Positions 9,603-43,797 of a stretch of DNA of 44,617 bases are shown here, one piece after another. Position numbers and translations under genes: made by a program. The stretch covers positions 1 through 44,617 of the forward strand of contig DF237623.1 of assembly GCA_000708835.1 (NCBI GenBank), given 5' to 3'. The DNA is from Klebsormidium nitens. Taxonomy: Eukaryota > Plantae > Klebsormidiophyceae. Position 1 is the stretch's first letter; the number at the start of each line of letters is the position of its first letter. A model generated the notes under the pieces. The model did not search any database. It saw only the letters and a program-made list of their open reading frames with translations, and was not told the origin of the DNA.

Positions 9603-9707
9603 ATATGTAAAGGTTATCCAACGAGTGCGAGAGAATGGCCCCGAGTGGAATATGAAGCTCGAGTTTGACGCGAAATCTTCGATATTCTCTCGCACTCGTT
9701 GGATAAC
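9603..9707. mobile_element. Fold-back derivative (right end' - partial hairpin - right end) of the hairpin repeat family
   Basis: gttatccaacgagtgcgagagaat (9613-9636) is the reverse complement of attctctcgcactcgttggataac (9684-9707). The interior matches the hairpin apex and the 19-bp IR seen in the copies at 9907 and 11472. Confidence 0.8.
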
Positions 9708-9709
9708 TA

Positions 9710-9901
9710 CCGTACTGCTATTTATTCTCGGCAAAAAATAAATAATTATCCGGGCCTGCCGAAAATTTCAGAAAATACTTTGAGGCGATAATGGTTCGAT
9801 AACGGTTATTTTAGCAGGTAACCACTGGTCTGCCGAAAGGATAGAAAGTTTCATAATTAATTATTCGGCGTCGAAGGTGCTGAAATCAAATAGCAGTACG
9901 G
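9710..9901. mobile_element. 192-bp MITE with 14-bp perfect TIRs and TA target-site duplication (Tc1/mariner-type signature)
   Basis: ccgtactgctattt at 9710-9723 and aaatagcagtacgg at 9888-9901, with TA at 9708-9709 and 9902-9903. Confidence 0.8.
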
Positions 9902-9906
9902 TACTA

Positions 9907-10295
9907 CTTATCCCACGACCGGTTTTTGCGCTCAGCCATTTCGGCGTTGAGTATTAGTAAAGTTTCGGCGTCGAACTTAATCGGCGACCCAGGCGTTGAA
10001 TATATATTTTTATTCAACGCTCAGCGGTGGAATAAACGCGAGACCCTTACCAGGTTCGACGATACATCGGAGTCCGGTCGTGAGATAAGTCGGTTACCCT
10101 CACTCCTGCTCGAGCATATCGAAGATTTCGCGTCGAACGAGAGCGGATATTCCACGAGGGCCTCCGAGGCCCGGGTGGAATATGAAGCTCGAGTATATAT
10201 ATTCAACGCCTGGGTCGCCGACTAAGTTCGACGCCGAAACTTTACTAATACTCAACGCCGAAATGGCTGAGCGCAAAAACCGGTCGTGGGATAAG
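9907..10295. mobile_element. 389-bp element with 101-bp TIRs (left-end/left-end' derivative of the hairpin repeat family)
   Basis: 9907-10007 and 10195-10295 are reverse complements with one mismatch. 9907-10134 is near-identical to 11472-11699. Confidence 0.9.
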
Positions 10296-11166
10296 AGGGG
10301 ACAGGAGTCAGGACCACAAGTCACATGCATCACATGGCGGGGCAGGCAAAAGCTGGGCAGGCAAAAGCTGCCTCTGCAGGATGGCCGGGAAGCTGCGCAC
10401 TGTGCTGCACTCGCACTGTGCACAGTCTGCTGTCTGCAGACGGTGTGCAGTGTGCACGAATCTTCTCATAAATCTTGATCGGCCATCGATTGATTAAACA
10501 TCCTGCTTCGACGGTCAGCTTTGGCCGTCTGTATCATATCGGACGGATGTTGTATTCACGGAAAGAGAGAAGAACACGCGGCAGCACAGCAATCGATGAA
10601 TCTCATATAGAATCTTTACGAGATCCGACCATGCAGAAGGGATAACAGAATTGCAATTCCAGGCATGCCAGGACCGTCGGTCAATCAATACCGGTAATCA
10701 AATTCCTCAAATTCAAAGACGAAGTTTGACTTGATAGGGTTCTAGGGTCGAGTCCGATCGGCTGACATAGTCTCCAAGGTGATTGGCATGTATCACATTA
10801 CATTCTTCATTCAAATACATTATACAAATTCGATGATTGCGGGCCGCTCATGATTTTCTGATCGTCTTGTTGCGGCACCGCCTGGCATATGTGGTGCATC
10901 ATTCTTGGATCGAATGAAAACGTGAAGCATGAATTCTCATCTGTGCGCCGCCGGCCGTCTAACGTACGTGTCACTCCTAGGTAATGATGGTAGACTGCAT
11001 AGGACGTAGCATGTGCAATTCGTCACTATAATGCTCTTAGCTAGGAGGAGCTAATGCACGTGCCGCTGGCCGGGCCGTCGCGTCACCAGCATAGCAATTT
11101 ATGTGCAATTATGATATGTCCGGATCGCTACCTTTTCAGTAATTCAATGAAGTACAGGGTCGAAAT

Positions 11167-11391
11167 TCAGCTACCTAGTACAACGCAAGTGCAAGCACCT
11201 ATGGACCATACTAGGTTTCCAATACACATCCTTTCTGTTATTGGATGTGTGAAGGTCTCTTCACATCGAATTCCTCGCAACCGAGTGCAAGTACTTGCAT
11301 TGACTTCAATTGTAAGTACAAGGGCAACTGCCAACGTGATCAGACACACCGTCGAGATCCCAGGTTTTGTTCCTACCTTAGCGGTGGGCAT
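11167..11391 (-). CDS. Candidate small secreted cysteine-rich peptide (74 aa)
   Basis: True ATG at 11391 with A at -3. Basic N-terminus, hydrophobic stretch CLITLAVALVLTI and a V-N-A|S cleavage-like site. The 42-aa mature region has 5 Cys ending in CxC. No expression or homology evidence is available. Confidence 0.4.
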   Translation of the reverse strand: MPTAKVGTKPGISTVCLITLAVALVLTIEVNASTCTRLRGIRCEETFTHPITERMCIGNLVWSIGACTCVVLGS

Positions 11392-11471
11392 ACTAGATCT
11401 TTTCTACCTAGCGTTACTGAATTTGACGCATGCCACCTAGCTGGAGGCAAAACATTGTCAGGATATAAGTT

Positions 11472-11811
11472 CTTATCCCACGACCGGTTTTTGCGCTCAG
11501 CCATTTCGGCGTTGAGTATTAGTACAGTTTCGGCGTCGAACTTAGTCGGCGACCCAGGCGTTGAATATATATTTTTATTCAACGCTCAGCGGTGGAATAG
11601 ACGCGAGACCCTTACCAGGTTCGACGATACATCGGAGTCCGGTCGTGAGATAAGTCGGTTACCCTCACTCGTGCTCGAGCATATCGAAGATTTCGCGTCA
11701 AACTCGAGCTTCATATTCCACTCGGGCCTCGGAGGCCCTCGTGGAATATCCGCTCTCGTTCGACGCGAAACTTCGATATTCTCTCGCACTCGTTGGATAA
11801 CCTTTACGTAT
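11472..11811. mobile_element. 340-bp asymmetric hairpin-rich non-autonomous element (most complete copy of the family)
   Basis: Same left end as 9907. Internal inverted copy of the left end at 11639-11654 (15/16). Long imperfect hairpin at ~11657-11802. A short imperfect inverted repeat links the ends (ttatcccacga 11473-11483 versus tcgttggataa 11790-11800). Confidence 0.85.
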
Positions 11812-16633: not shown

Positions 16634-16776
16634 AAACTTTCGGCACAGCTCCTGTTTACGTTTGCAAATGCTTCTGAAGTGTATGCCTCCACGAGGCGCT
16701 CATCATGCTTGCAGGTCTCATTCTGCCCCTGAGCCAGTGGGCATCTGTGATTTGAGAAGACTGCCTCGCAGCAGCG

Positions 16777-19700
16777 ATGGCGGCAATTCATCTGTTAAGG
16801 GCCGCGGCGCGGCAGCTGCTCAATGCAAAGCGGCTGCCACCCTGGAAACCCTTGGCGCCTGCCTCATCAAATGCCACCACTACTTTCAAAACACTCTTTG
16901 ATTATGGTCCCCATGCAACGGCGCGAGCCCGCTTCTCCCAGCTTGTGTTTGGCAGATCTTACTCGAGCGTTGCAGCTGCGGTCCCGGAAGCAGATGACCA
17001 GTCGGGCAGCGAAAGCGCCAGCGTGCGGGGGCCGGAGGGCATCCGGTGCTTTGCAATCATCGCGCACGTCGACCATGGCAAGACGACGCTGCTGGACCAG
17101 CTGCTGAAGCAGGTCGGGGACTCACTGACCACGGAGCGCGTTATGGACAGCATGTCGCTGGAGAAGGAGCGAGGGATCACCATTGCCGCCAAGGTGAGCG
17201 CGAGCCGCTGGCCCAAATAAGCTGTTCGCCTGTGATAGGGATTAAGTGGCCAGCAATGCTGTGTCTAGTAGTGGCTTGCGTCGCCGTTCTGCTTGGCACA
17301 CCCTGCATCGCCACCTTTCACAATTACTCATCAAGTAACTACTAAGGAGGGCCGCTTGGCTTTTCTGTGCGATGGATGGGTGGTGCAAAGTGATTTGCCC
17401 TCTCTGGCAGTCATGGCTGGCCTACAAGAAATATGCGAGACATGTGCAATAGATCGGGGAACAAGAGCTCAATTAGATAAGTATCCCTGAAGCAGCCCTG
17501 GCGCCCACCCTCTTTCAGATTCCAGACGTTTTTATCCGCGGGAAATGGTCTACTGGACGTGGCAATTTGCCCAGGTTCAAAGGGTCTCCCAACAGTAGTT
17601 TCTGCTGGACTTTGTTGTGTGGAAAACAATGCTGCGTAGAAGGATCCGTGCATCATGCGGGTATATGCAGTGAGCTAAGTGAAGTCGCTTTTCTGCATCT
17701 TCGTGACTACTACTACCCGAGTCCTGTACGTCTGTCATGGCGTTTGAATCTTCTGTGCATTACAGCAAGGTATCTCTGCTTGCAGTACACATCTCTTCCG
17801 TACAAGGGCTACACACTGAACGCTGTCGACACGCCTGGTGAGGCTTGATTATGTGTGACAGGTTTGAATGCACAATGAGTCGTTGTCCCTTCAATACAGC
17901 AATACAATCAGGCTATGCAAATGAACGAGAACCTGCAGGATGAGCAACTATCGTGGCTTCAGATCAGGGTGAGGCTGCCCACTCTCTGTCTCTCCTTCTG
18001 CTGACTGCTTCCCCACTTACAGATGTGCATTCTTCTTTCTTCAGTCCATGGCACGCTTATCACGTTACACCTATCTTCTCATGCTCATTGGCACTCTCGT
18101 GTTCACCGGCTTCCAAGCGGGGATCTAAAAGCTTTCCAAAGTGCCCTTTAACTGGCCCCCTTCCCCATGCCCACATAGCCTTTTCATAGTTAAATGATTC
18201 CTTATACCTTGCCCGCAGGCCACGCTGACTTTGGCGGTGAGGTGGAGCGCGTGCTGGACATGGTGGACGGCGCGGTCCTGCTGGTGGACGCCACGGAGGG
18301 GCCCCTTGCGCAGACCAAGTTTGTGCTCTCCAAGGCGCTGCGCCGCGGCCTGCGGCCCCTCGTGCTCTTCAACAAGGTCGACCGCCCCACCGTTACTGCG
18401 CAGGTCAGGCCAGGCCGACACGAACTCTAGTAAAAGCGCTGCAATGATTGCTTGGATTCGGGTAATCTGAGATCCGAACGAAGGGCTGTCAAGGAAAGGC
18501 GGGCCATAGTCAGCCGTTACGGGCTGAGTACCCACTCCCGCTGCATCAGTTGCTTCCAAAAGCGCTACTTCTTTGTAAGTGGCTCTGCAATAATTGCATT
18601 GACGTTTGCCTGTTTATGGGCGGGATCGTACGCCCAATTTGAATCATTCTCTTTGCGCGCCTCACTTCCGCCGCCCCTAGTTTCCATGACGCCTCCCTGA
18701 CGGTGCGCATTTGCATGTCACAGCGGTGCAGCGAGGTGGAGAGCGAGCTATTCGATCTGTTTGCGCTGCTGGGCGCCACGGACGAACAGCTGGACTTCCC
18801 GGTGCTGTACGCGTCTGCCAAGGAGGGCTGGGTCACCGCGCGCCTGCCGTCCGCCGCCGACCCGCTGCGCCCCGAGGAGCGCGTCATGGACCCGCTGCTG
18901 GACAGCATCCTGCAAAACGTGCCCCCACCGGCAGGGGACCCGGGGGGGCCCTTCAAGATGCTGGTGAGGGTCGAGAGTCGGAAGGGCGGAGAAATGGAAC
19001 AGTATGGGAAACTCTATGCAGAAGAGAGATTCTTCGTTACTTCGTTCAGACAATCACGGGCATTCTTCTGAGACGCTCGATTGATTGTCAGGATGAGCCG
19101 GAAACGTTGTAACCCTCTTGTTACAGAAGTAGCATCCTCGAAACTTTTTGCCTTCTGGTCTCTGATAAACCTTGCTGGCCGGTCGAGAGTAATCTTCTTG
19201 GGCGCTCCTTCATCTACGGGCAGCGTCCCTGGTATGCGATGCGTAGAAACCAACTCCTTGCCGACTTCAATATCTTGTGACGCAGGTGAGCATGACGGAA
19301 CGGGATCCCTTCCTAGGCCGCATTCTGACCGGCCGGATTGCCTCGGGCCGCGTGCGTGTGAACGACCGTGTTCATGCGCTGGCGCTCAAGGGCGACGGCA
19401 GCCCACACGACGACGGGCGCGTCACCAAGATCCTGAAGCGCCTGGGGGGGCTCGGGCGGGTCACCATGACGGAAGCAGGCGCGGGGGATATTGTCAGCAT
19501 AGCGGGGCTGGAGCGAGCCGGGGTCACGGACACAGTTGCGGCGGTAGAGGTTAACGAAGCATTGCCAGCGACGCCGATTGACGTGCCGACAATTAAGATG
19601 GTGATGGGGGTGAATGACTCCCCGTTGGGTGGCCGGGACGGGACACACGTGACGGGGAGTAAGATTGGAGAGCGGCTGATGTCGGAGGCGGAGAACAACG

Positions 19701-21883
19701 TGAGTATCGTGGTGAGCGCGATCGAGGGCGGCGCGGAGTCGTACGAGGTGCAGGGCCGCGGGGAGCTGCAGCTGGGGGTGCTCATCGAGACCATGCGCCG
19801 GGAGGGCTTCGAAATGTCCATCTCACCACCCGCAGGTAAGCGCTGCGAACGGACGTTTTACTGGGCCGTGAGCTCGTGACTGCGCGCCGTCCTTTGTAAG
19901 GCCTTCCTTCGTGTTACTTGCAGCGGCGTGCAGTTGGGGTCCCATCGCAAGTGCTGACGCCTGCCTTTTTGCACGTTCCGCCGGCTCAGTTCAGAATATT
20001 TTGGCATTACCTCCGCTGCTTCCCTTTCGTGAGCACTCAGTTGAATGGTTCACGATGTCTGCTCGTAGCTTCACCTTTGCAAAGACCCGGTTGTCGGCCA
20101 CTCTCACCGAGCAGAGCCGAACATTGCTCTCTTTCCTCTTCCGCTCACAATGTTTTTGGTGGCTGTTGCCCTGAGACCGTTGCCCTTTGCCCCGGCCTCT
20201 CACGTCCGCTGTTTGCGCGCGCGTGCAGTGCTGTTGCAGACGGGCGAGCGCGGCGAGAAGCTGGAGCCGATTGAGGAGGTGGTGGTGGAGGTGGACGTGC
20301 CGTACATGGGGATGGTCATCGAGGCGCTGACGCTGCGCAAGGGCGAGCTGGAGGAGATGCTGCCCGACGGCGCGGGGCCCGGCCGCGCGCGCCTCGTGTT
20401 CACGTGCCCCTCGCGCGGCCTGCTCGGCTACCGCTCCGTCTTCACCACCGACACGCACGGCACCGGCGTCATGCACCGCGCCTTCCGCGAGTGAGCGCAT
20501 GCGGCCGGCATAGAGTTTTTGGGCGACGTTGCGATTGGACATGGCGTTTCACCGTAGACAGAGCGTGGGATTAGAGTGCGGCAGCTGCCGGCGGCCGGCC
20601 TCGAAAGCGCAAAGCCGAGACTACTTACCAGTTTCATTTCCTCTTCCGATCCTGGATACAGAGCAACCTGCACATTCTCTCAAGTGTTTGATGGCGAGAC
20701 ACTTCGATCCAAAGGAGAGAAGTGTGGAGAAGAGCTCTCGAGAGGCGGCGTCGCCGTTTTGGATCCTGCTCTGTTCCGCAGTCCTGACTTTCTGCTGCGG
20801 TGGGTGGCAGGTACGGCCCGTGGCGCGGCGGTCTGGACCGCGTGCGCAAGGGCGCGCTGGTGTCCATGGCGCAGGGGCCCTCTACCGCGCACGCGCTCGG
20901 CAGCCTCGAGAGCCGCGGCGTGCTCTTCATCGCGCCGCAGGAAGACGTGAGTCCGAACACGCACCGCCCCTGGAACGCTTTTACATCCAATACTTGCGGA
21001 TCAGAAGAAAGCGAGCACTTTGGCAGCAGGAGTGGCTGCGGAAGCGGGCTGCGATTGTCGTGGCCAAGTGCGTCGTCCTCGACTAGGCGGTCACGGCAAG
21101 CGCGCGCGCGTCCATGTGCTACCCCTGTTCGATTGATGCCAACGACCAAGGCAATATCTGAACCAACGCAAGCCGCATGGGGGTGAATTGGGTCCCAACT
21201 TCTGCTCCGTTTTTCCCACAGTGCTACGACGGTATGATCATTGGCGAGCACAGCCGCGGCGAGGACCTGGAGGTGAACCCGGTGCGCGCCAAGCAGCTGA
21301 GCAACATGCGCGCGAGCGGCACCGACGAGAAGGTACGCCTGCAGCCGCCGCGCGCCATGACGCTCGAGGAGGCCATCGGATACGTCGCGGCAGACGAGCT
21401 CATCGAGGTGAGACAGACGCGTGCCGGGGGAACGGGGCCGGCCCCTCTTGTGTTCGTACCTCTCGTGCTTAAATCGAATTCTGCTGTGGAGATTGAGATG
21501 GTTTCGGACCTTGTCTGTTTCGAAACGGCAGGTAGTCTGGGATGTGCCAAAAAAAACGCCACGAAGTAAGGCGTGCCACGTAGCCACGTGGCAGGGCTCC
21601 TTAGATCCGGTATGCAAATCTGGGTAACGTTTGTGCAGCAATAATTGGATGAATCGTGCGGGTCTCGAAGCAGGTTCTGTCTGCTTTCAGTTGTCGTTCA
21701 ACAAAGACGGGTCACTGCCAGGGATGCTTGGGCTCGCTTGGTCAATGTCGCGTGCTGTCGCTGGTGCCATTTCTAACTTATGATTCCTCGTCGGTGCAGG
21801 TTACACCGAAGTCAGTGCGATTACGGAAGAAGTATCTGAACTCAAGTCAGCGGAAAAACAGCAAACGAAGGGAATCGAGTTGA
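16777..21883 (+). CDS. TypA: TypA/BipA translational GTPase, organellar (probably mitochondrial), 9 exons
   Basis: Exons 16777-17193, 17786-17837, 18219-18403, 18724-18963, 19286-19835, 20229-20490, 20811-20946, 21222-21407, 21800-21883. Motifs [56 protein letters not shown] and [14 protein letters not shown]. The N-terminus is Arg/Ala/Leu-rich like a transit peptide. Confidence 0.95.
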
Positions 21884-34589: not shown

Positions 34590-37500
34590 TCAGCCCTGCT
34601 TGAGATGGCGGTACAGCTGGAGGTAGTCCTGCGCGGAGCGGCTCCAGGACCAGTCCTGCCGCATCGCGCGCGGCACCAGCTGGCCGTGCCACCACTCCCC
34701 CGCGTCGCGGTACGCGTCGATGGCGCGCCGCAGCACCGTCTCCACGTCGGCCTCGGACTTGCCCGCGAACGTGAACCCGTTGCGCTCGTGCTCGGGGGCG
34801 CCGGAGTGCGCCACGTCGCGCACGGTGTCCGCCAAGCCACCCGTCTGGCGGCATACGGGGATGGTGCCGTACCTGCGCCCGAAACGAGGCGGTATCAAAG
34901 CAGAGCTTGAAGTAACGCGGGTTTTGCTAGAGCATTTCGACGACTACCAAGCGTGCACACATGGATAGTCTAAGTATGGCAGTTGGCGTATATTCGACAT
35001 AATACCCCTCGCCACAGGCCAGGGGCGTCAATCGACGAGCGACAAGATGGAACATCCGGGAGAGTGCCACTCTTGACAGAGAGTCGCGCTTGCCGCAGCG
35101 TCTCTCCCCTGCCAGGCTGGCGTGAGCGCGCTGCCGCACTGACCTGAGCGCGATGAGCTGCGTGAGGCCGCACGGTTCGAAGAAGGAGGGGATCAGGATG
35201 GCGTCCGCGCCCGCGTAGATGCGGTGCGCGAGCGCCTCGTCGTAGCGCAGCACGAGCCGCCCCGCGGTGCCGCCCGCCAGCTCGGCGGCCCACCGCTCGA
35301 AGCCCTGCTGCACCGCGGACTCGGGTGCGCTGCCCAGCACGCAGAACTGCGCGCCCGCCTGCTGCGCGACGCGCAGGCCGTGCAGGATGAGCGGCAGCCC
35401 CTTCTGCTCCGTCAGCCGGGACACCACCTGCGGAGTAGCGGGGGGGCGCGCCATGAGCGCGAGCAGCAGGCAAGAAGGACATTCTTGTTGCTTCCAGAGG
35501 CCACGAAGAAAGGCCGCGGGGCAAAGATCCATCCTTTGTACTGAATTCTTTGATCGACTCGCAATACCTGGGGTGACACGTCCAGGATTTCTACAGCTCG
35601 GTCAAGGCAGCCGGAGTCGTCGAGGTCCTCTGAAACATCAGCTTTTGTAATGCATAAATACAACAAAGGGGGAACTGCGGACAAGATTGCTTACTGCAAT
35701 GAGCGGCGTGTTAGGCTTTGCGGGCAGGCCCAGCTCGGCGAGCAGCGCGGCCTTGCAGACGGCCTTGCCCGCGGTGTCGGCGGCGGTGTAGTGCGCGGGG
35801 AGGGCGGCGTCGGTGGCGGGGTCCCACATGTCGGGGTCGATGCCGTTCAGGATGCCGCGGAACTTGCCCGCGTGCCGCCCCAGCACGCCCTGCAGGCCCA
35901 TCCCAAACTCGGGCGCGAATACCTCGCGCGCATACGTCGGGGACACGGTGGTCACCGCGTCCGCGTACACGATGCCGCCCTTGAGCAGGTTGATGTCCGG
36001 CTGCGCGGCCGCGAAGCCCGGCCGCGTGTCGTCCAGCAGGCGCTCCGGGGTGTAGGCGCCCGCGCGGGGCAGGCCCATCAGGTCCAGGTAGTTGGGGGTG
36101 AGCCACCCCTGGAACGCGATGTTGTGAATCTGGGCACCCAACAGTAGAATGTCCCGTCAGAAGCAACGGAGAGAAATCTTGTGCCAACGTTCAGGTGGCA
36201 TCTCGCTGTTTGGAAGAATCAAGAAAGGCTGAAACTCGGATTTTTCGCTAAAGGCAGACACATTCTGCAAAGGGGGCGGCTCCCAATCCGTAACCGGACC
36301 GACTAGTCGTCGAACGAGTGCCTCCTCTCTACTGAAATCAAGGTCCGATTTCACGAGAAGGTCCTCGGTGAGATTCACGTACACAATTAGAGCCTTCTTC
36401 GCTCAGATCAGCAATCAACCTTGAAAGCCCCTGGATTTTACAGCCCGTTCGATGCAGAAGTTCTGGTGTGGATACCCTCGGGAGATTGTTAACCTTCAGT
36501 TGACATGAGCATTCTCACTGAATCTGGGGAACTTGGGGAAAAGAAGTTTAGCCCCAATACATAAAGCGCCCAGGTGATTACCGCTGTGCAGGCCCGCGCA
36601 ACTCTGTCCTCCTGCGGGGATACCTTTTTTCGCTGCCTCACCGTGAGCACGACTCCGGGTCGCGTGAGGCCGCGCGCTCTGTACTGTTCCTTGAGCAGCG
36701 GCGCAACTGCGGCGGACTGCCAGTCGTGGATGTGCAGCGCGTCCGGCTGCTTGCCCTGCGTCTCCTCTTCCCACACCAGGAACTCGAGCGCTGCGCGCGC
36801 AAAGAACAGAAACCGCTCCGCGTCGTCCACCTCGCCTGCGCATCGGAGGGAAGAAACAGCATGGGCAGAGGGCCCGCAAGCTGGCCCGAAGAACGACTTA
36901 CAGCGCAGACGTCTTCTGACGTGTACACCCAAGGGATACGTCCCGTCGGAGGCGGAGACTAAAGTCATGATCACTTATTGCCCAAGACGTTTACCACGAA
37001 GGAAAGATGGCAATGTGCATTTTGCTTAACCCGGGTCCGGAGTTCTCAAAGGCCAGTCAAGATGCATGTGCGACGAGCTGTGCGGGTGCGCTGACCGTAG
37101 AAGCGGCCGCGCCAGAAGAAGCGCTCGCGCGAGTAGGGCTCGACGAAGTAGACGGGGAGGCCCTCCGCGATGCCGGCCCACACGACCGTCTTGATGGTGC
37201 TGCCGCCCCACGGCACCTCCAGCTGCACCAGCTGCCGCAGCTCCGCCACGTCGGCGTAGCGGATGCAGTCGTACTTGGGCAGGATGATCTCCGCGAGCGT
37301 GCCCGCCGCCTGGTGCGCCTTGGCCAGGCTGACCACCACGTCGGCCAGGCCGCCCACCTTGGCCAGCGGCGCCATCTCGGACGCGATGTGCACCACGTGC
37401 AGCCCGGGGCGCCGCAGGAAGCCGCAGCGCGACTGCAGCTCCCCAACCACCTCCGAGTCCGCCTGCAACCGCACCTGCACAGGCAAGAAAGGGGGAAGAG

Positions 37501-39816
37501 GGGGGCAAGGGGGTTGAGACGAGGGAGGAAGGAAATTCGTATTGGTAGTTTTCTTCTTAGACGAGGGGATCCGCCTATTGTAGTTGGAAGTGTTTGTTGC
37601 AACAGCTTCTGAAGAATGTGAGGACAATTGCAGCTTCCAACATCTTTCAATGGGTTGCGGCTTACTGGACCTGTCCAGCCTCGGCACCCCGTCTGGCGCA
37701 CTTTGTAACGCCAGTCGCGAGTCTAAGCAACCTGGACACTGGTTCAAGGTTGGTGACACACGCAGCAATCTATCTTCAGGGGAAGTTGTTCTGCTCTGCG
37801 CAAGGAAAGGCCTGCTCTGCTCAGATTGAAATAGTCATTTAAGTGCTGAAGGATGTCTACAGACTGCTTCTCCTGTTGGATTGCATAACCACAGGCTTTT
37901 TTCCAAGAATCATTGCAGCTCCTCTGCAAATACGTACATCTGTCTTTCATTTCAAACAATCCAGTCAAAATCTTTCGGTGAAAGCTGGACAAGGCCGATC
38001 CAAAAGCTCCCCACAAGACAGTGTTACTGCAGACTGCATTAACCTGGCCACAACCGCCACTGCTACACTGTAGCGCTGCACCAAAACTTCCAGTCAGCCG
38101 CGCTGCACGAAGCTGCTGGGTACAAATTACCAATTTCACTGGTCTTCACTCCCCAGATTCAGGTGCCCGGTTGAAGACTCTGCCAGATCTAATTTGATAG
38201 CTGCTCCCGACATTTGTGACGAGCACGCACAATCCAGAGTCTGACCGGGGACGGTCCGCAGAAGCAAGCGATATTATTTGTTTCCCCAGAGCCTCACCTT
38301 TTTGTATGCTTTCAAGAGCTCAAAGTCACGCTGCCACGCAAGCGTCCGCAGGAGAGACCCCTGCTCCGGCGTCAACAAGCTCTGCGCAGCCAAAGCTGCA
38401 AAGCCCAAAGATAGCCGGTTGAGACCTCTCAACAACATGGTTTCAAGATTCATCTGGAGACAACCAGAAAGCTGCTTTAGTTCTGATGAGCTGACAAATG
38501 GGACTGCGAGCAGGCGGCATGTCAAGACAAGACATCAAAAAGCCTTAATGTGTAGGTGTGCCCACCTTCGATACGGAGGAGCAGGCTGGAGACGAGGTCG
38601 CGTGGGGGTGGCTCAGGACGCACTGCGAGGAGGCCCTCCCCTGGCGCCAGCTCGATGGCCAGGCTCCAGTTGGCGCCGCCGTTGTTGTCCCAGCGCTCCT
38701 CGTCTGCCACCACGCCCTTGAACGCCAGCTGCACCTCCAGGTGCGCCAAGCTGGACAGCGCAGCCAGCGTCACCAAGTACACCCCACGCCACGCCTGCAA
38801 GGCACACCCACAGCGTTGACGTAAACTGAGGTGGACATGAGGCAGCGTGCGCGGAATTGCTCAGCTGCTTGTAGAAGTGACAAAAGCACTGATCAGATCC
38901 AGGCATGCAACTTGGTCTGCGTTGCAAACAGTGCAAAGAGGGTTCCCGATACTCTGCCCCACAGCGCAGCCAGTACGCATGCGGCGCACCTGAGGCCCTG
39001 CACTCTGGAGCTCCACATCCAGGGTGTCCTTCCAGCCGCTGTGGCCAACGTGCGACCAGACACGCTGCGCACCCTGGAGGCTGCGGTTCTGGCCCTCGTA
39101 CAGGATGTGCACCATGTACAGGGGGGGCGCTACCGACACGGACAAATAAGGGGCCGCAGCGATGTGCACAGTGCCAGGGGCAGACACCGCAGGGGCCACC
39201 ACAGGCAGCTCCTGCGCAGAAGAGCAGCCGGGGACATTAGATCTATTAGCACTGGAGCTGAGGTAACCAAAAAGAGCTTCACAGATGTAGCAGCGAAATG
39301 AGTCGTTGTCCATCTGTTTCTTACGTTACACAGATCAAGCGCTCTTCCCATACAGTCTATAAATCCTTCCTGATTGTCTTTCTGCTTCAGTTGGCAGCTT
39401 TCTGTTGTCAACACATGGATCTAAGCGTCATCATCAAGAGTAGGACCAGAGGAATTGCCAGAGCAACCAGAGCGAAGCTTCTGATTGATTTGATGACAGA
39501 TAGCCATCAGGAATAAGCTCACCGGCACACGGGTCGACGGCAGATTCTGCTGTGGTCGGCACACCTCCTGTAACAAGGAAGCAGATGGTATCGTGCTGGC
39601 AGCCCGCAACCGATTGTGCATCTCACCACCAATTCCCCATGGTGGTGCGCTTGCGCGCTTCCTGATCTTTCCAGCAATGAGATCTCCATGTGTCTTCTGT
39701 CCACATAGCGTCCCTTGTTGACTCCTCCGATGCGATCGGTGGCCAAGTAGATGGTCTGGATAGTGACACCACAGCTGGTAGGTGCTCCCAAGGACTTGTG
39801 CACAGCCGAGCGACAT
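34590..39816 (-). CDS. Starch synthase (GT5) of the SS4-like clade with one N-terminal CBM53/CBM25-like domain; 5' end uncertain
   Basis: Exons 34590-34872, 35144-35427, 35695-36129, 36642-36835, 37096-37474, 38298-38395, 38566-38794, 38990-39211, plus 5' exon(s) ending at ~39521 and probably starting at ATG 39816. Motifs EMAPLAKVGGLADVV, HIHDWQ, IHNIAFQG, LNGID, SRLTEQKG, PSFFEPCGLTQLIALRYG, TGGLADTV and DWSWSRSAQDY. The CBM shows LY..R.L.G...VWSHVGHSGW and WDNNGGANW. Confidence 0.92.
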
Positions 39817-40265: not shown

Positions 40266-41100
40266 CATTATCACTATCAGCAGCGGTGCGCGCGCAGTGG
40301 TGCTGTTTACTGGCATCGAACGGCTGCAGGAATTGCCAGAATTTTGATTGACGGTCATATGCAGCTGGGGCGAAACTTCTGATAACAAGAAGCAGTTGTA
40401 ATATGCATGGCGGTACGTGTGTTGCCTCGATCCGACTCGAGGCTCATGAGCGGGGCATGAGCGCACACAGCCGGGCAGGATGCGCACAACGGCTGGCGCC
40501 TCTCTATTCTGATTCCAATTGCAACATGAATGAGGGAGCCAGGCTGGGACTACACAGGCTGGGCCATACAATGTAGGTAGCCTGGTGCTTCAGGACTACA
40601 GCTTCTCCCGAGCAACCTGCTAGTTTTAGTGTCATCTAATTTAGACTAATTTCACTCACAAACAGACTGACTAAGTTATACTAATATTTTCACTAAAACT
40701 AGCAGGTTGCTCGGAACTAGCTGTACGTCCGGTATGCCAAAGAATATGATAGACCGCGAGTACCAACATTGGAGCTTTTGTAGGCTTGAAATTTGGTGCT
40801 CGGGGCCCGGGGATGTTAGAGTACACGAAGTAATCATCAAGGTGCCACTGAAGTCTGTGTTCAAGTTGTTCCCATTGAATGCCTGGATTCCCTTCAATGC
40901 GGTATAAGCACTGTGGCACCCAGGCAGCTTGTTATTCACTTGCCTGTCAGGCTGATTTGTGGAGCAATGCTGAGGGAACATTGACTTCTTCCGACGTAAT
41001 GAGAAGGCCCTGCTCGACCTTGCAGCAGAAGCGTGTCAGATTGAAGGCTGTCAGTCCAGTACTACAGAAGGGAGTCAATCGGGAGTGAAGACGTGCAGAT

Positions 41101-41152: not shown

Positions 41153-43797
41153 ATGGGGTGTGCGGCCTCCGTTGAGGCTGTGGCCAGCGACGGCAAGCGC
41201 CTGCTGCCGGAGGGCGTGGCCAAGCTGGACAGCAAGGCGCCGCAGGCAGACCCCCCCGCCACCAAGGAGGACGGTGCACCCAAAGCAGGTCCCCCCGCAA
41301 GCAATGCCAGCGCGCCCGAGGCAAAGCCCACTCAGGGAAAGAGCCCCGCTGATGCAACGGGGCCCACCAACGGGTCTTCCCCTGCAACCAACACAAGTGT
41401 TGCCATCAAAGAAGCAAATGCAGAGCGCTTCAAGGACGGCGAGGCAACTGTTGTGTTTGTTCTGGGTAAGTCAAAAACTCACAAATGACTCACAGATCAA
41501 ACCTAGTCTGCAAGGATCTGAGCCCCCCTTCAGATTCTCTGCAAAGTGGCTCTCTGCAATATGGATTGGGCAACAACCATTTGGGCAGATCCTGTGAGAT
41601 GTCGATGTTCACCAGTGCTAGCAAGAGGGCACTGTTGATGACGTTTCTCGCTACAGTTGGATGTTTTCAGCGTCGCTGTCAGTCACTAATGGAGTGGGGT
41701 TTAGGATCCAAAGGGACCGTTTCGAAAGAGATCTGCAGCTCGCTCCCAGTTCACCTCCTGGTTGTTGCTTCTCTTTGACCAGCTTCCGACTCAATCGTCC
41801 GTCCCTGGCCCTGATTGTTTGATCTGAGTGTGATGACATTATTCTCTGGCGCGTAGGCGGGCCTGGCTGCGGCAAGGGCACCCAGTGCGCGCGCATGGTG
41901 GCAGACTTTGGCTTCCAGCACCTCAGCGCGGGCGACCTGCTGCGCGCCGAGGTGCAGAAGGGCAGCGCGCTGGGGCAGCAACTGGATGCCACCATGAAGG
42001 TAAAACGTTTGCAGTTTGACAAAAGTGGCCGAACCACACACTGGGGAATGGTGGCCCATCAGCCTGCAGCCCTGAAATCTGCCGTGACTGGAGTCATGAC
42101 CATCGAGCTACATCAGCAGTAGCTTCTCAATCCGTTCGAACAGCGCTCGGGCACAAAGAGTAAAGGCAGAGCCAGTAACAAAAGGTGCAGAGGCAACAAA
42201 GGAGGGGCGCTTGTTTCCTCTTGACCAGCATGCAGTACTCCGCTCCTCTCCTGCCTGTGCTGACGTGTGCCCCCTTATTCTTTCCTGCTTGCCAGGAGGG
42301 CGGCCTGGTCCCCGTGGACGTGACGCTGGCGCTGCTGCGCGCCGCCATGAAGGCGTCCCCCGTGAAGCGCTTCCTCGTGGACGGCTTCCCGCGCGCCGTC
42401 GACCAGGCCGTCGCCTTCGAGGCCAGCGTGGCCGCGCCCAACCTGGTGCTCTTCTTCGACTGCCCCCTCGTGAGCCGCCACCCACTCAAAGCACACGACC
42501 CGAAAATGGACAGTAGGCCAGGTTTTTAATGGAGACTGCGTCACACACTCATGGCAGAGGCTTGATATTTTTTTTTGGACTTCCATGAACGAGTTTCTGC
42601 TTCACCCTGCCGTTGGTTCTCAATCAAGAGTCGCATTTTAAGAGCAAAACTGTACGCTACAAATCAAACTGCGAGCCTGAAGGCAAAGGGATTCAAAAAG
42701 ACAAGTGGTGACAGCCATTCTCGACGAGTCCTTCCTCTTTTGAGCTTGGAAGTTCGCCTCGTGCACACGAGTAAGAGTAGAGAAGAAGCTCAGAATCGTC
42801 ATTCTATTTTGGCTGCGCACTCCATGTACCAAATTCATTTTGCCCTCTTGGTATGTCTCAACGACTTTTCAATGAACGGTCTTGCGCAAGGCCCCTCGCC
42901 TGACTATCCGCGCCCCTCCTCTTGGATCGACAGGAGACGATGCAAGCGCGGCTGATGAAGCGCGGCGAGAGCAGCGGGCGCGCGGACGACAACCCCGCCA
43001 CCATTCAGAAGCGCTTCGACACGTTCCTGAGCCAGAGCCTGCCCGTGCTCGCGCACTACCAGGCCGCCCTCGAGGCCGACCCGCGCGGCGCCACCGTGCA
43101 CAAGATCTCCGCGGTGCCCCCCCCCGACCAGGTCTACACCGAGGTGGCCGCCATCCTGCGGCAGTGCCAGCACACCTTCGTCCCCGGAGCTGCCCCCGCG
43201 CCCGCCCCCAACACCGACGAGCCCGCGCCCGCTGCCCTGCTTGCGGCGCCGGCGGCAGTCACGGCCCCCTCCGCCGCTAGAGAGGCGACCAGCGCACTTC
43301 CGGCGTCCGTGGTGGCAGCGGCAGCCGGGGAGACGAAGCCGTCTGCCCCGATGACAGCCACGGCTGCGGCAGTCGCACCGATCGTTGCCCCTGTCGCTGG
43401 CAGCGGGGCGCCGGCCAGCCCGCGTGCACCCGCGGTGGCAGAGGCGGTCCCCGCAGCACCAGTGGGGACGGCTGCAGCGACGGAGGTCAAGGCAGGGGGG
43501 AGTGCGGGCGGCGCAGGAGTGGAGGAAGCGAACAAGGGCGCCGCTGAGAGTGGGGCATCTCTGCCTGCATTGGCAGCCACGCCGGTTGCACAGGAGGCCG
43601 TACCGGCCGCCGCGGCAAACAGCGCGCCCACTCCAGCGGAAAGCAAACCAGCAGAGGCAGGAGGGGACGGCAAAGCTGAGGACGATAAGAAAGCGGACAA
43701 GGGCGCAGCGGGTACTACTGTGGATGGGCCGCAAGAAGCAAGAAGCGAGGTGCTCATCGCAGCAGTGACGTCGGAACCCAAGCAAGAAGCTCAATAG
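41153..43797 (+). CDS. UMP-CMP kinase / adenylate kinase family protein with MGC N-acylation motif and long Ala/Pro-rich extensions, 4 exons, ~497 aa
   Basis: Exons 41153-41465, 41857-41999, 42296-42469, 42934-43797 (1494 nt). P-loop VFVLGGPGCGKGTQC, HLSAGDLLRAE, FLVDGFPR and GRADDN...IQKRF. Confidence 0.92.

Follow-up and report, generated by a model that had tools for sequence, protein, structure and literature searches.

Inverted hairpin apices in a repeat cluster of Klebsormidium nitens and their probable origin in one inversion

The DNA analysed here (the window) is the whole 44,617-nucleotide (nt) stretch of contig DF237623.1 of Klebsormidium nitens, assembly GCA_000708835.1, which looks like nuclear DNA of an alga of the green-plant lineage and shows no sign of a human or animal-virus source. 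Self-comparison showed that a short hairpin-forming repeat and all repeats related to it are confined to a 2.2-kb cluster at 9603-11811, with none elsewhere in the 44.6 kb. An earlier reading made from the letters alone (the sequence-only reading) had noticed that the apex of the hairpin is present in both orientations after the same 19-mer, and had proposed that the repeat either replicates through a nicked hairpin or carries a small programmed switch. The observation itself is real and far beyond chance. We consider, however, that the flip/flop appearance is probably produced by the two edges of one ordinary inversion of 9686-10115 (430 nt) within a three-copy cluster of hairpin repeats.

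The repeat unit and its copies

Four copies of the repeat were seen in total, three in the cluster and one on another contig. The intact local copy, copy 2 (11472-11807, plus strand), serves as the reference for orientation. Copies a and b are two rearranged neighbouring copies, defined under the single-inversion reading; 9907-10194, which holds the apex that the sequence-only reading had named copy 1, is referred to as copy 1, and 9640-9707 as the third copy. The unit is about 336 bp long, with limits set by comparison with the outside copy, and is made up of two modules, which in copy 2 are arranged as follows:

11472-11655, plus strand: module 1, a weak foldback with terminal inverted repeats of 16-17 nt and an AT-rich palindromic centre (fold z = -3.9)
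11657-11802, plus strand: module 2, an imperfect hairpin of about 145 nt composed of outer arm, 19-mer, apex, right repeat and right end
11681-11699, 11700-11761 and 11762-11779, plus strand: the 19-mer, the apex and the right repeat of module 2, respectively; the element ends at about 11807

The imperfect hairpin capped by the apex, already described from the letters, was borne out by folding: 11657-11802 reaches -42.2 kcal/mol as DNA (z = -8.0), and none of 200 shuffled sequences folded as well (0/200). No perfectly paired stretch of this hairpin is longer than the 19-mer, and the hairpin stops 5 nt short of the right end of the repeat. A motif, TTATCC(C/A)ACGA, is found inverted at both ends of each module, with 8 sites observed versus 0.86 expected. 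The outermost bases of the element are not symmetric; the right end has about 6 extra bases, and no clean terminal inverted repeat could be made out. As a possible target-site duplication, TAC is present on both sides of the outside copy and of copy a, in 2 of the 4 observable ends. On the left, copy 2 has TTC and copy b has CTC; the right-hand TAC may belong to the element itself.

One open reading frame (ORF) crosses the element, without any Pfam match. Its translation was searched and led to a single protein (P0001) on an 804-bp contig of the European Nucleotide Archive (ENA) (L003; ERZ23789742, metagenome). Across two word searches, and an exhaustive one that covered 1.84 billion representatives, this protein was the single true relative and, in the exhaustive search, the sole credible one; the remaining 68 matches of the ORF searches were weak multi-stretch matches to long repeat proteins and were rejected as copies. 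As the ORF has neither a Pfam domain nor another credible relative, the unit is therefore taken as non-coding. The contig carries a full-length copy at L003:330-669, 340 nt long and 94.4% identical to 11468-11807, with flanks unrelated to the window. Exact searches for the 19-mer in viral contigs returned 0 matches, as did searches for the start of module 1 and for the apex pattern. The exact 19-mer was also found at two metagenome-contig loci and three genome-contig loci, where similarity extends over 19-21 nt only; these were put down to chance.

The existence of a 94%-identical full-length copy with unrelated flanks on another contig agrees with the suggestion of the sequence-only reading that the repeat is a small eukaryotic mobile element. 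The unit behaves like a miniature inverted-repeat transposable element (MITE) or a foldback repeat. It is a short non-coding repeat of a eukaryote that is probably mobile, and is a further example of small hairpin-rich non-autonomous repeats, a kind that is already known.

The two modules differ in conservation. Between copy 2 and the outside copy, 16 of 185 positions are changed in module 1 and 1 of 146 in the hairpin module (11657-11802 versus L003:519-664; Fisher p = 0.0007), so module 1 has diverged by about 9% between the two loci and the hairpin is nearly invariant. The hairpin is also asymmetric between its strands. Four of its 10 mismatch blocks are TC facing TC, all two-base mismatches have the same polarity, and its plus strand has 9 CTCG versus 2 CGAG (208 versus 201 in the whole window). 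The complementary strand, in which these become tandem G/A mismatches, folds better both as DNA (-49.7 kcal/mol, z = -10.5, versus -42.2 kcal/mol) and as RNA (-94.6 versus -76.1 kcal/mol). The TC/TC polarity suggests that one strand is constrained, or that the underlying mutational process has a direction. The asymmetry could stem from protein-binding motifs lying in the same direction on both arms, from use of the hairpin on one strand, or from repeated tiny spacer inversions.

Orientation map and a probable single inversion

Every local piece was aligned to the intact copy in both orientations. The resulting map of the cluster, with corresponding copy 2 positions and scores in brackets, is:

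9607-9636, minus strand: right-end piece of copy a (11807-11778; 30/30), within a 34-nt inverted repeat at 97%
9640-9666, minus strand: last part of the apex of copy a (11726-11700; 27/27), within a 56-nt inverted repeat at 95%
9667-9685, minus strand: 19-mer at the left breakpoint, exact complement of the left-arm 19-mer with 0 mismatches; orientation is minus on its left and plus on its right
9686-9707, plus strand: right-end piece of copy b (11780-11801; 22/22), first part of the inverted block
9708-9906, no strand assigned: unrelated small inverted-repeat element flanked by TA, separating copies b and a within the inverted block
9907-10115, plus strand: module 1 (9907-10090) and outer left hairpin arm of copy a (11472-11680), last part of the inverted block
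10116-10134, plus strand: 19-mer at the right breakpoint, 0 mismatches; orientation is plus on its left and minus on its right
10135-10194, minus strand: apex of copy b, the flipped copy 1 of the sequence-only reading (11761-11702; 58/60 versus 28 in plus)
10195-10296, minus strand: first 101-102 nt of copy b (11572-11471; 100/102), seen as inverted repeats of 102 nt and 101 nt, each at 99%
10297-11470, no strand assigned: single-copy spacer between the reverse copy b and the direct copy 2, with no other match in the window, no recognisable gene and ORFs without Pfam match

The order of orientations along the cluster is thus minus, minus, 19-mer, plus, plus, 19-mer, minus, minus, and the block 9686-10115 is bounded by the 19-mers at 9667-9685 (minus) and 10116-10134 (plus). 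The plus orientation of 9907-10115 is given by scores of 97/101, 81/83 and 23/25 and by a direct repeat of 238 nt at 97%. The 19-mer occurs in identical form at exactly three sites of the window, the two breakpoints and 11681-11699 (plus), where none would be expected by chance. The inverted apex after the 19-mer is further borne out by a stretch of 69 nt, 10126-10194 versus 11702-11770, which is 99% complementary. The three local copies are about 98.7% alike. Copy a lacks about 51 nt of the element (around 11727-11777) between 9636 and 9640, and copy b lacks about 129 nt (around 11573-11701) between 10194 and 10195.

An inversion bounded by 19-bp inverted repeats, as the sequence-only reading had it, is therefore present in the map, and the neighbours of the flipped pieces show how far it extends. 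That reading had taken the third copy as a second instance of the flipped apex, followed by the same closing repeat and right end as in copy 2, and so as confirmation on both flanks. It is correct that 9640-9664 equals 10170-10194 at 24/25 and that the 19-mer and the right end follow, but only the last 25-27 nt or so of the apex are present. The closing repeat is the exact complement of the left 19-mer, and not the closing repeat of copy 2, which is one base shorter. On the other flank, a right end in reverse orientation (9607-9636) lies 3 nt before the apex piece, so that this piece is not flipped relative to its left neighbour. Copy 1 in turn has no right arm, and its apex abuts the first 101 nt of the element in reverse orientation (10195-10296), a neighbour relative to which it too is unflipped.

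These relations can be accounted for by a single event. Copies a and b would at the start have been adjacent and both in reverse orientation, each with one internal deletion. An inversion of 9686-10115, with breakpoints in the left-arm 19-bp repeat of a and the right-arm repeat of b, would then have placed a direct-oriented block between reverse-oriented pieces and given the 60-bp apex its seeming presence in both orientations. It is the hairpin form of the module that gives the two breakpoint repeats opposite orientations. When the block is turned back, on coordinates only, 11726-11681 joins 11680-11472 and 11801-11780 joins 11779-11702. Copy a then reads 11807-11778, a gap of about 51 nt and 11726-11472, and copy b reads 11801-11702, a gap of about 129 nt and 11572-11471. 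One inversion thus explains the flipped apex after the left arm (10135-10194) and the flipped half-apex that precedes the right arm and right end. It also explains two inverted repeats, one of 24 nt without mismatch (9613-9636/9684-9707) and one of 101 nt at 99% (9907-10007/10195-10295).

Under the single inversion the apex is oriented alike in every copy with respect to the ends of that copy. The count of orientations over copies that the sequence-only reading had called for was made and reaches one outside copy: the two intact copies, at 11472-11807 and L003:334-669 with different flanks, have the same apex orientation (n = 2), and within that reach the inverted form is found only at this locus, the outcome that the sequence-only reading had itself named as a refutation. 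The outer left arm of copy 1 retains the left-arm form (23/25 in direct orientation versus a score of 9 reversed), and so does the one-base bulge of its 19-mer (19/19 direct). The asymmetries of the outer arm thus stayed in place, which speaks against the complete hairpin having been transferred.

The inversion likely arose by template switching between inverted-repeat arms or by homologous exchange, either of which hairpin-forming DNA would favour. Homologous exchange between the 19-mers gives the same product as template switching, and the two are not distinguishable from this sequence. Homology-driven events are expected at the 19-mer, since perfect pairing in the hairpin extends furthest there. 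The deletions end at the tips of the two hairpins and beside the edge of the 19-mer or repeat, and both might have arisen together with the inversion in one multi-switch replication accident. In yeast, template switching between inverted-repeat arms inverts the spacer and homogenises the arms, with spacers of a few bp (PMC8604942).

Several points weigh against the single inversion. It requires two extra internal deletions, one of about 51 nt and one of about 129 nt. At the single base by which the left and right 19-mers differ, both junctions have the left-arm type, which is not predicted by a simple reciprocal exchange; this needs mismatch correction, or arms of copy b that were already perfect. 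One copy was found outside the window, so the restriction of the flipped form to this locus rests on n = 1, and with two intact copies the test across the family is weak. Lastly, the un-inverted allele was not seen, the related contig L004 spanning only 16.7-21.3 kb of the window.

Among the alternatives, a true inversion of the 60-bp spacer in one ancestral copy, by template switching or intramolecular exchange between its own arms and followed by local duplication and truncation to give 9640-9707 and 9907-10194, is in our view unlikely. It agrees with breakpoints within the 19-bp repeats and with the near-identity of the two flipped pieces (24/25), and spacer inversion by template switching is documented, though for much shorter spacers (PMC8604942). 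It leaves unexplained, however, the reverse pieces 9607-9636 and 10195-10296 and the 24-nt and 101-nt repeats; given these reverse neighbours, a 60-bp flip needs at least two further inverted duplications. No intact flipped copy exists among the two intact copies, and the left-arm type of both junctions is equally discordant with this model.

An assembly artefact, in which a mis-join or a chimeric fold-back read at the hairpin-rich cluster hides a locus with copies all in the same orientation, is improbable. Chimeric reads and assembly errors arise easily in palindromic and inverted-repeat DNA, and the breakpoints coincide with repeats common to the copies. Against this, the three local copies differ at single positions (one base each in A of copy 1, A' and A of copy 2), so they are not collapsed or duplicated reads, and the junctions are clean and both present. 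Two further routes were set aside: a solo hairpin module at 9607-9707 inserted backwards would be equivalent on the left side and leaves copy 1 unexplained, and a snap-back palindrome at the apex with asymmetric deletion is possible for copy 1 and less economical than one inversion for 9607-9707.

A programmed flip/flop, by a nicked terminal hairpin (rolling-hairpin/HUH) or by a site-specific recombinase at the 19-bp repeats with the enzyme supplied in trans from an autonomous partner, is very improbable: the nearness of the hairpin to the right end of the element (within 5 nt), its conservation far above that of module 1 (1/146 versus 16/185), a CTCG excess that would suit strand-specific recognition and the location of both breakpoints in the same 19-mer speak for it, but the flipped junctions lie 430 nt from each other as the two ends of one inverted block within a single cluster, no flipped piece is seen outside the rearranged copies there, the outer-arm mismatches of copy 1 are unswapped, both intact copies share one orientation, and the 19-mer is simply where perfect pairing runs longest. 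No Pfam match to Rep/HUH, tyrosine or serine recombinase, polymerase B or transposase was found in 30 window ORFs (24 of them among the 33 with at least 150 amino acids); the sequence-only reading had suggested looking for a Rep/HUH helicase, a tyrosine recombinase or polymerase B in longer autonomous copies. There is likewise only a slender chance that the 145-nt hairpin is a cis-site recognised strand-specifically as single-stranded DNA or RNA, at which an enzyme encoded elsewhere would cut or exchange strands at the 19-bp repeat, with the inversion as a by-product; if true, such reading of a cis-site would make the repeat a hairpin-processing mobile element of a kind undescribed in green algae.

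Neighbouring genes and other repeats

The ORF fragments of the window are pieces of split genes for starch synthase, a TypA/BipA-type GTPase and an amidase, and the longest ORF in the 44.6 kb has at most 335 amino acids. The starch synthase gene is split by introns on the minus strand (34927-39313), with three ORF pieces matching the GT5 catalytic domain. One weak CBM53 match under the Pfam cut-off (23.9 versus 27.6 bits) at this locus may hint at a class III-like enzyme. The TypA/BipA-type GTPase gene consists of several exons at 16716-21262; a piece of it is 94% identical to a Logan protein, and the best named matches are from land plants at <60%. The contig of this protein, L004 (Logan SRR23617307), syntenic with the window over 16.7-21.3 kb only at 72-92% DNA identity, is probably from a related alga. 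By eye only, the ORF at 42922-43797 begins with what resembles the end of a nucleoside-monophosphate kinase, after which comes a long low-complexity tail rich in Ala and Pro; this ORF has no Pfam match, and in this GC-rich region the opposite strand is also open. Exact look-up of two window ORFs found neither on record.

Scans of the window for tRNA and Rfam families gave no match, nothing reaching an Rfam gathering score; a sub-threshold match to a miRNA family (22 bits versus a cut-off of 70) was dismissed as chance. A scan for bacterial promoters and terminators was at background level.

Inside the inverted block, 9708-9906 is an element of about 195 bp with terminal inverted repeats of 14-16 nt and TA on both sides, and looks like a Stowaway-type MITE insertion. 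Its arms (9708-9733/9878-9903; 26 nt) are 85% complementary. It has no meaningful match to the intact copy, and shares a 23-nt similarity (74-78%) with module 1. The single-copy spacer contains a perfect 15-nt tandem duplication at 10340-10370. Elsewhere, there is a palindromic element at 40593-40730 (143 nt, 72% self-complementary, with arms about 38 nt long) that has no sequence relationship to the hairpin repeat, an inverted repeat near the window start (247-330/601-691; 60 nt, 85%) and a direct repeat at 8025-8095/8243-8321 (79 nt, 73%).

Comparison with known systems

The repeat resembles MITEs and foldback elements in being short (about 336 bp), non-coding and dominated by hairpin-forming inverted repeats, in the inverted motif at the ends of its modules and in having an independent copy with unrelated flanks. 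Local clustering and rearrangement of copies, as seen in the window, are typical for foldback elements. It differs in showing no clean terminal inverted repeat at its two ends; among the four copies seen, TAC as a possible target-site duplication stands on both sides at 2 of 4 observable ends. A literature search for flip/flop in the hairpins of transposable elements found no paper.

Template switching at quasipalindromes (PMC8604942) is similar in that breakpoints lie inside short inverted repeats, the block between them is precisely inverted and further breakpoints lie at hairpin tips. The block in the window is about 430 bp and extends over two repeat copies, whereas the yeast spacers are of a few bp within one repeat. 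With Hin/Gin-type and Fim-type switches the window shares a segment bounded by short inverted repeats and found inverted; in contrast to these, it has no recombinase domain in its ORFs, its host is eukaryotic, and the repeats are the longest paired stretch of a hairpin.

The likeness to parvovirus and poxvirus hairpins is by description only: an imperfect palindrome near the end of the unit, with an asymmetric tip in two complementary orientations. In the window, however, the two orientations are best read as the junctions of one chromosomal inversion and the arm asymmetries are not exchanged, no nickase (Rep/NS1) domain was found in the 30 window ORFs, and the intact copies have one orientation (n = 2). 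In clusters of palindromic repeats, one inversion with its ends in hairpin arms looks just like the flip/flop that marks hairpin-transfer replication, and the two can be told apart by whether each flipped piece has flanks of unchanged orientation on either side.

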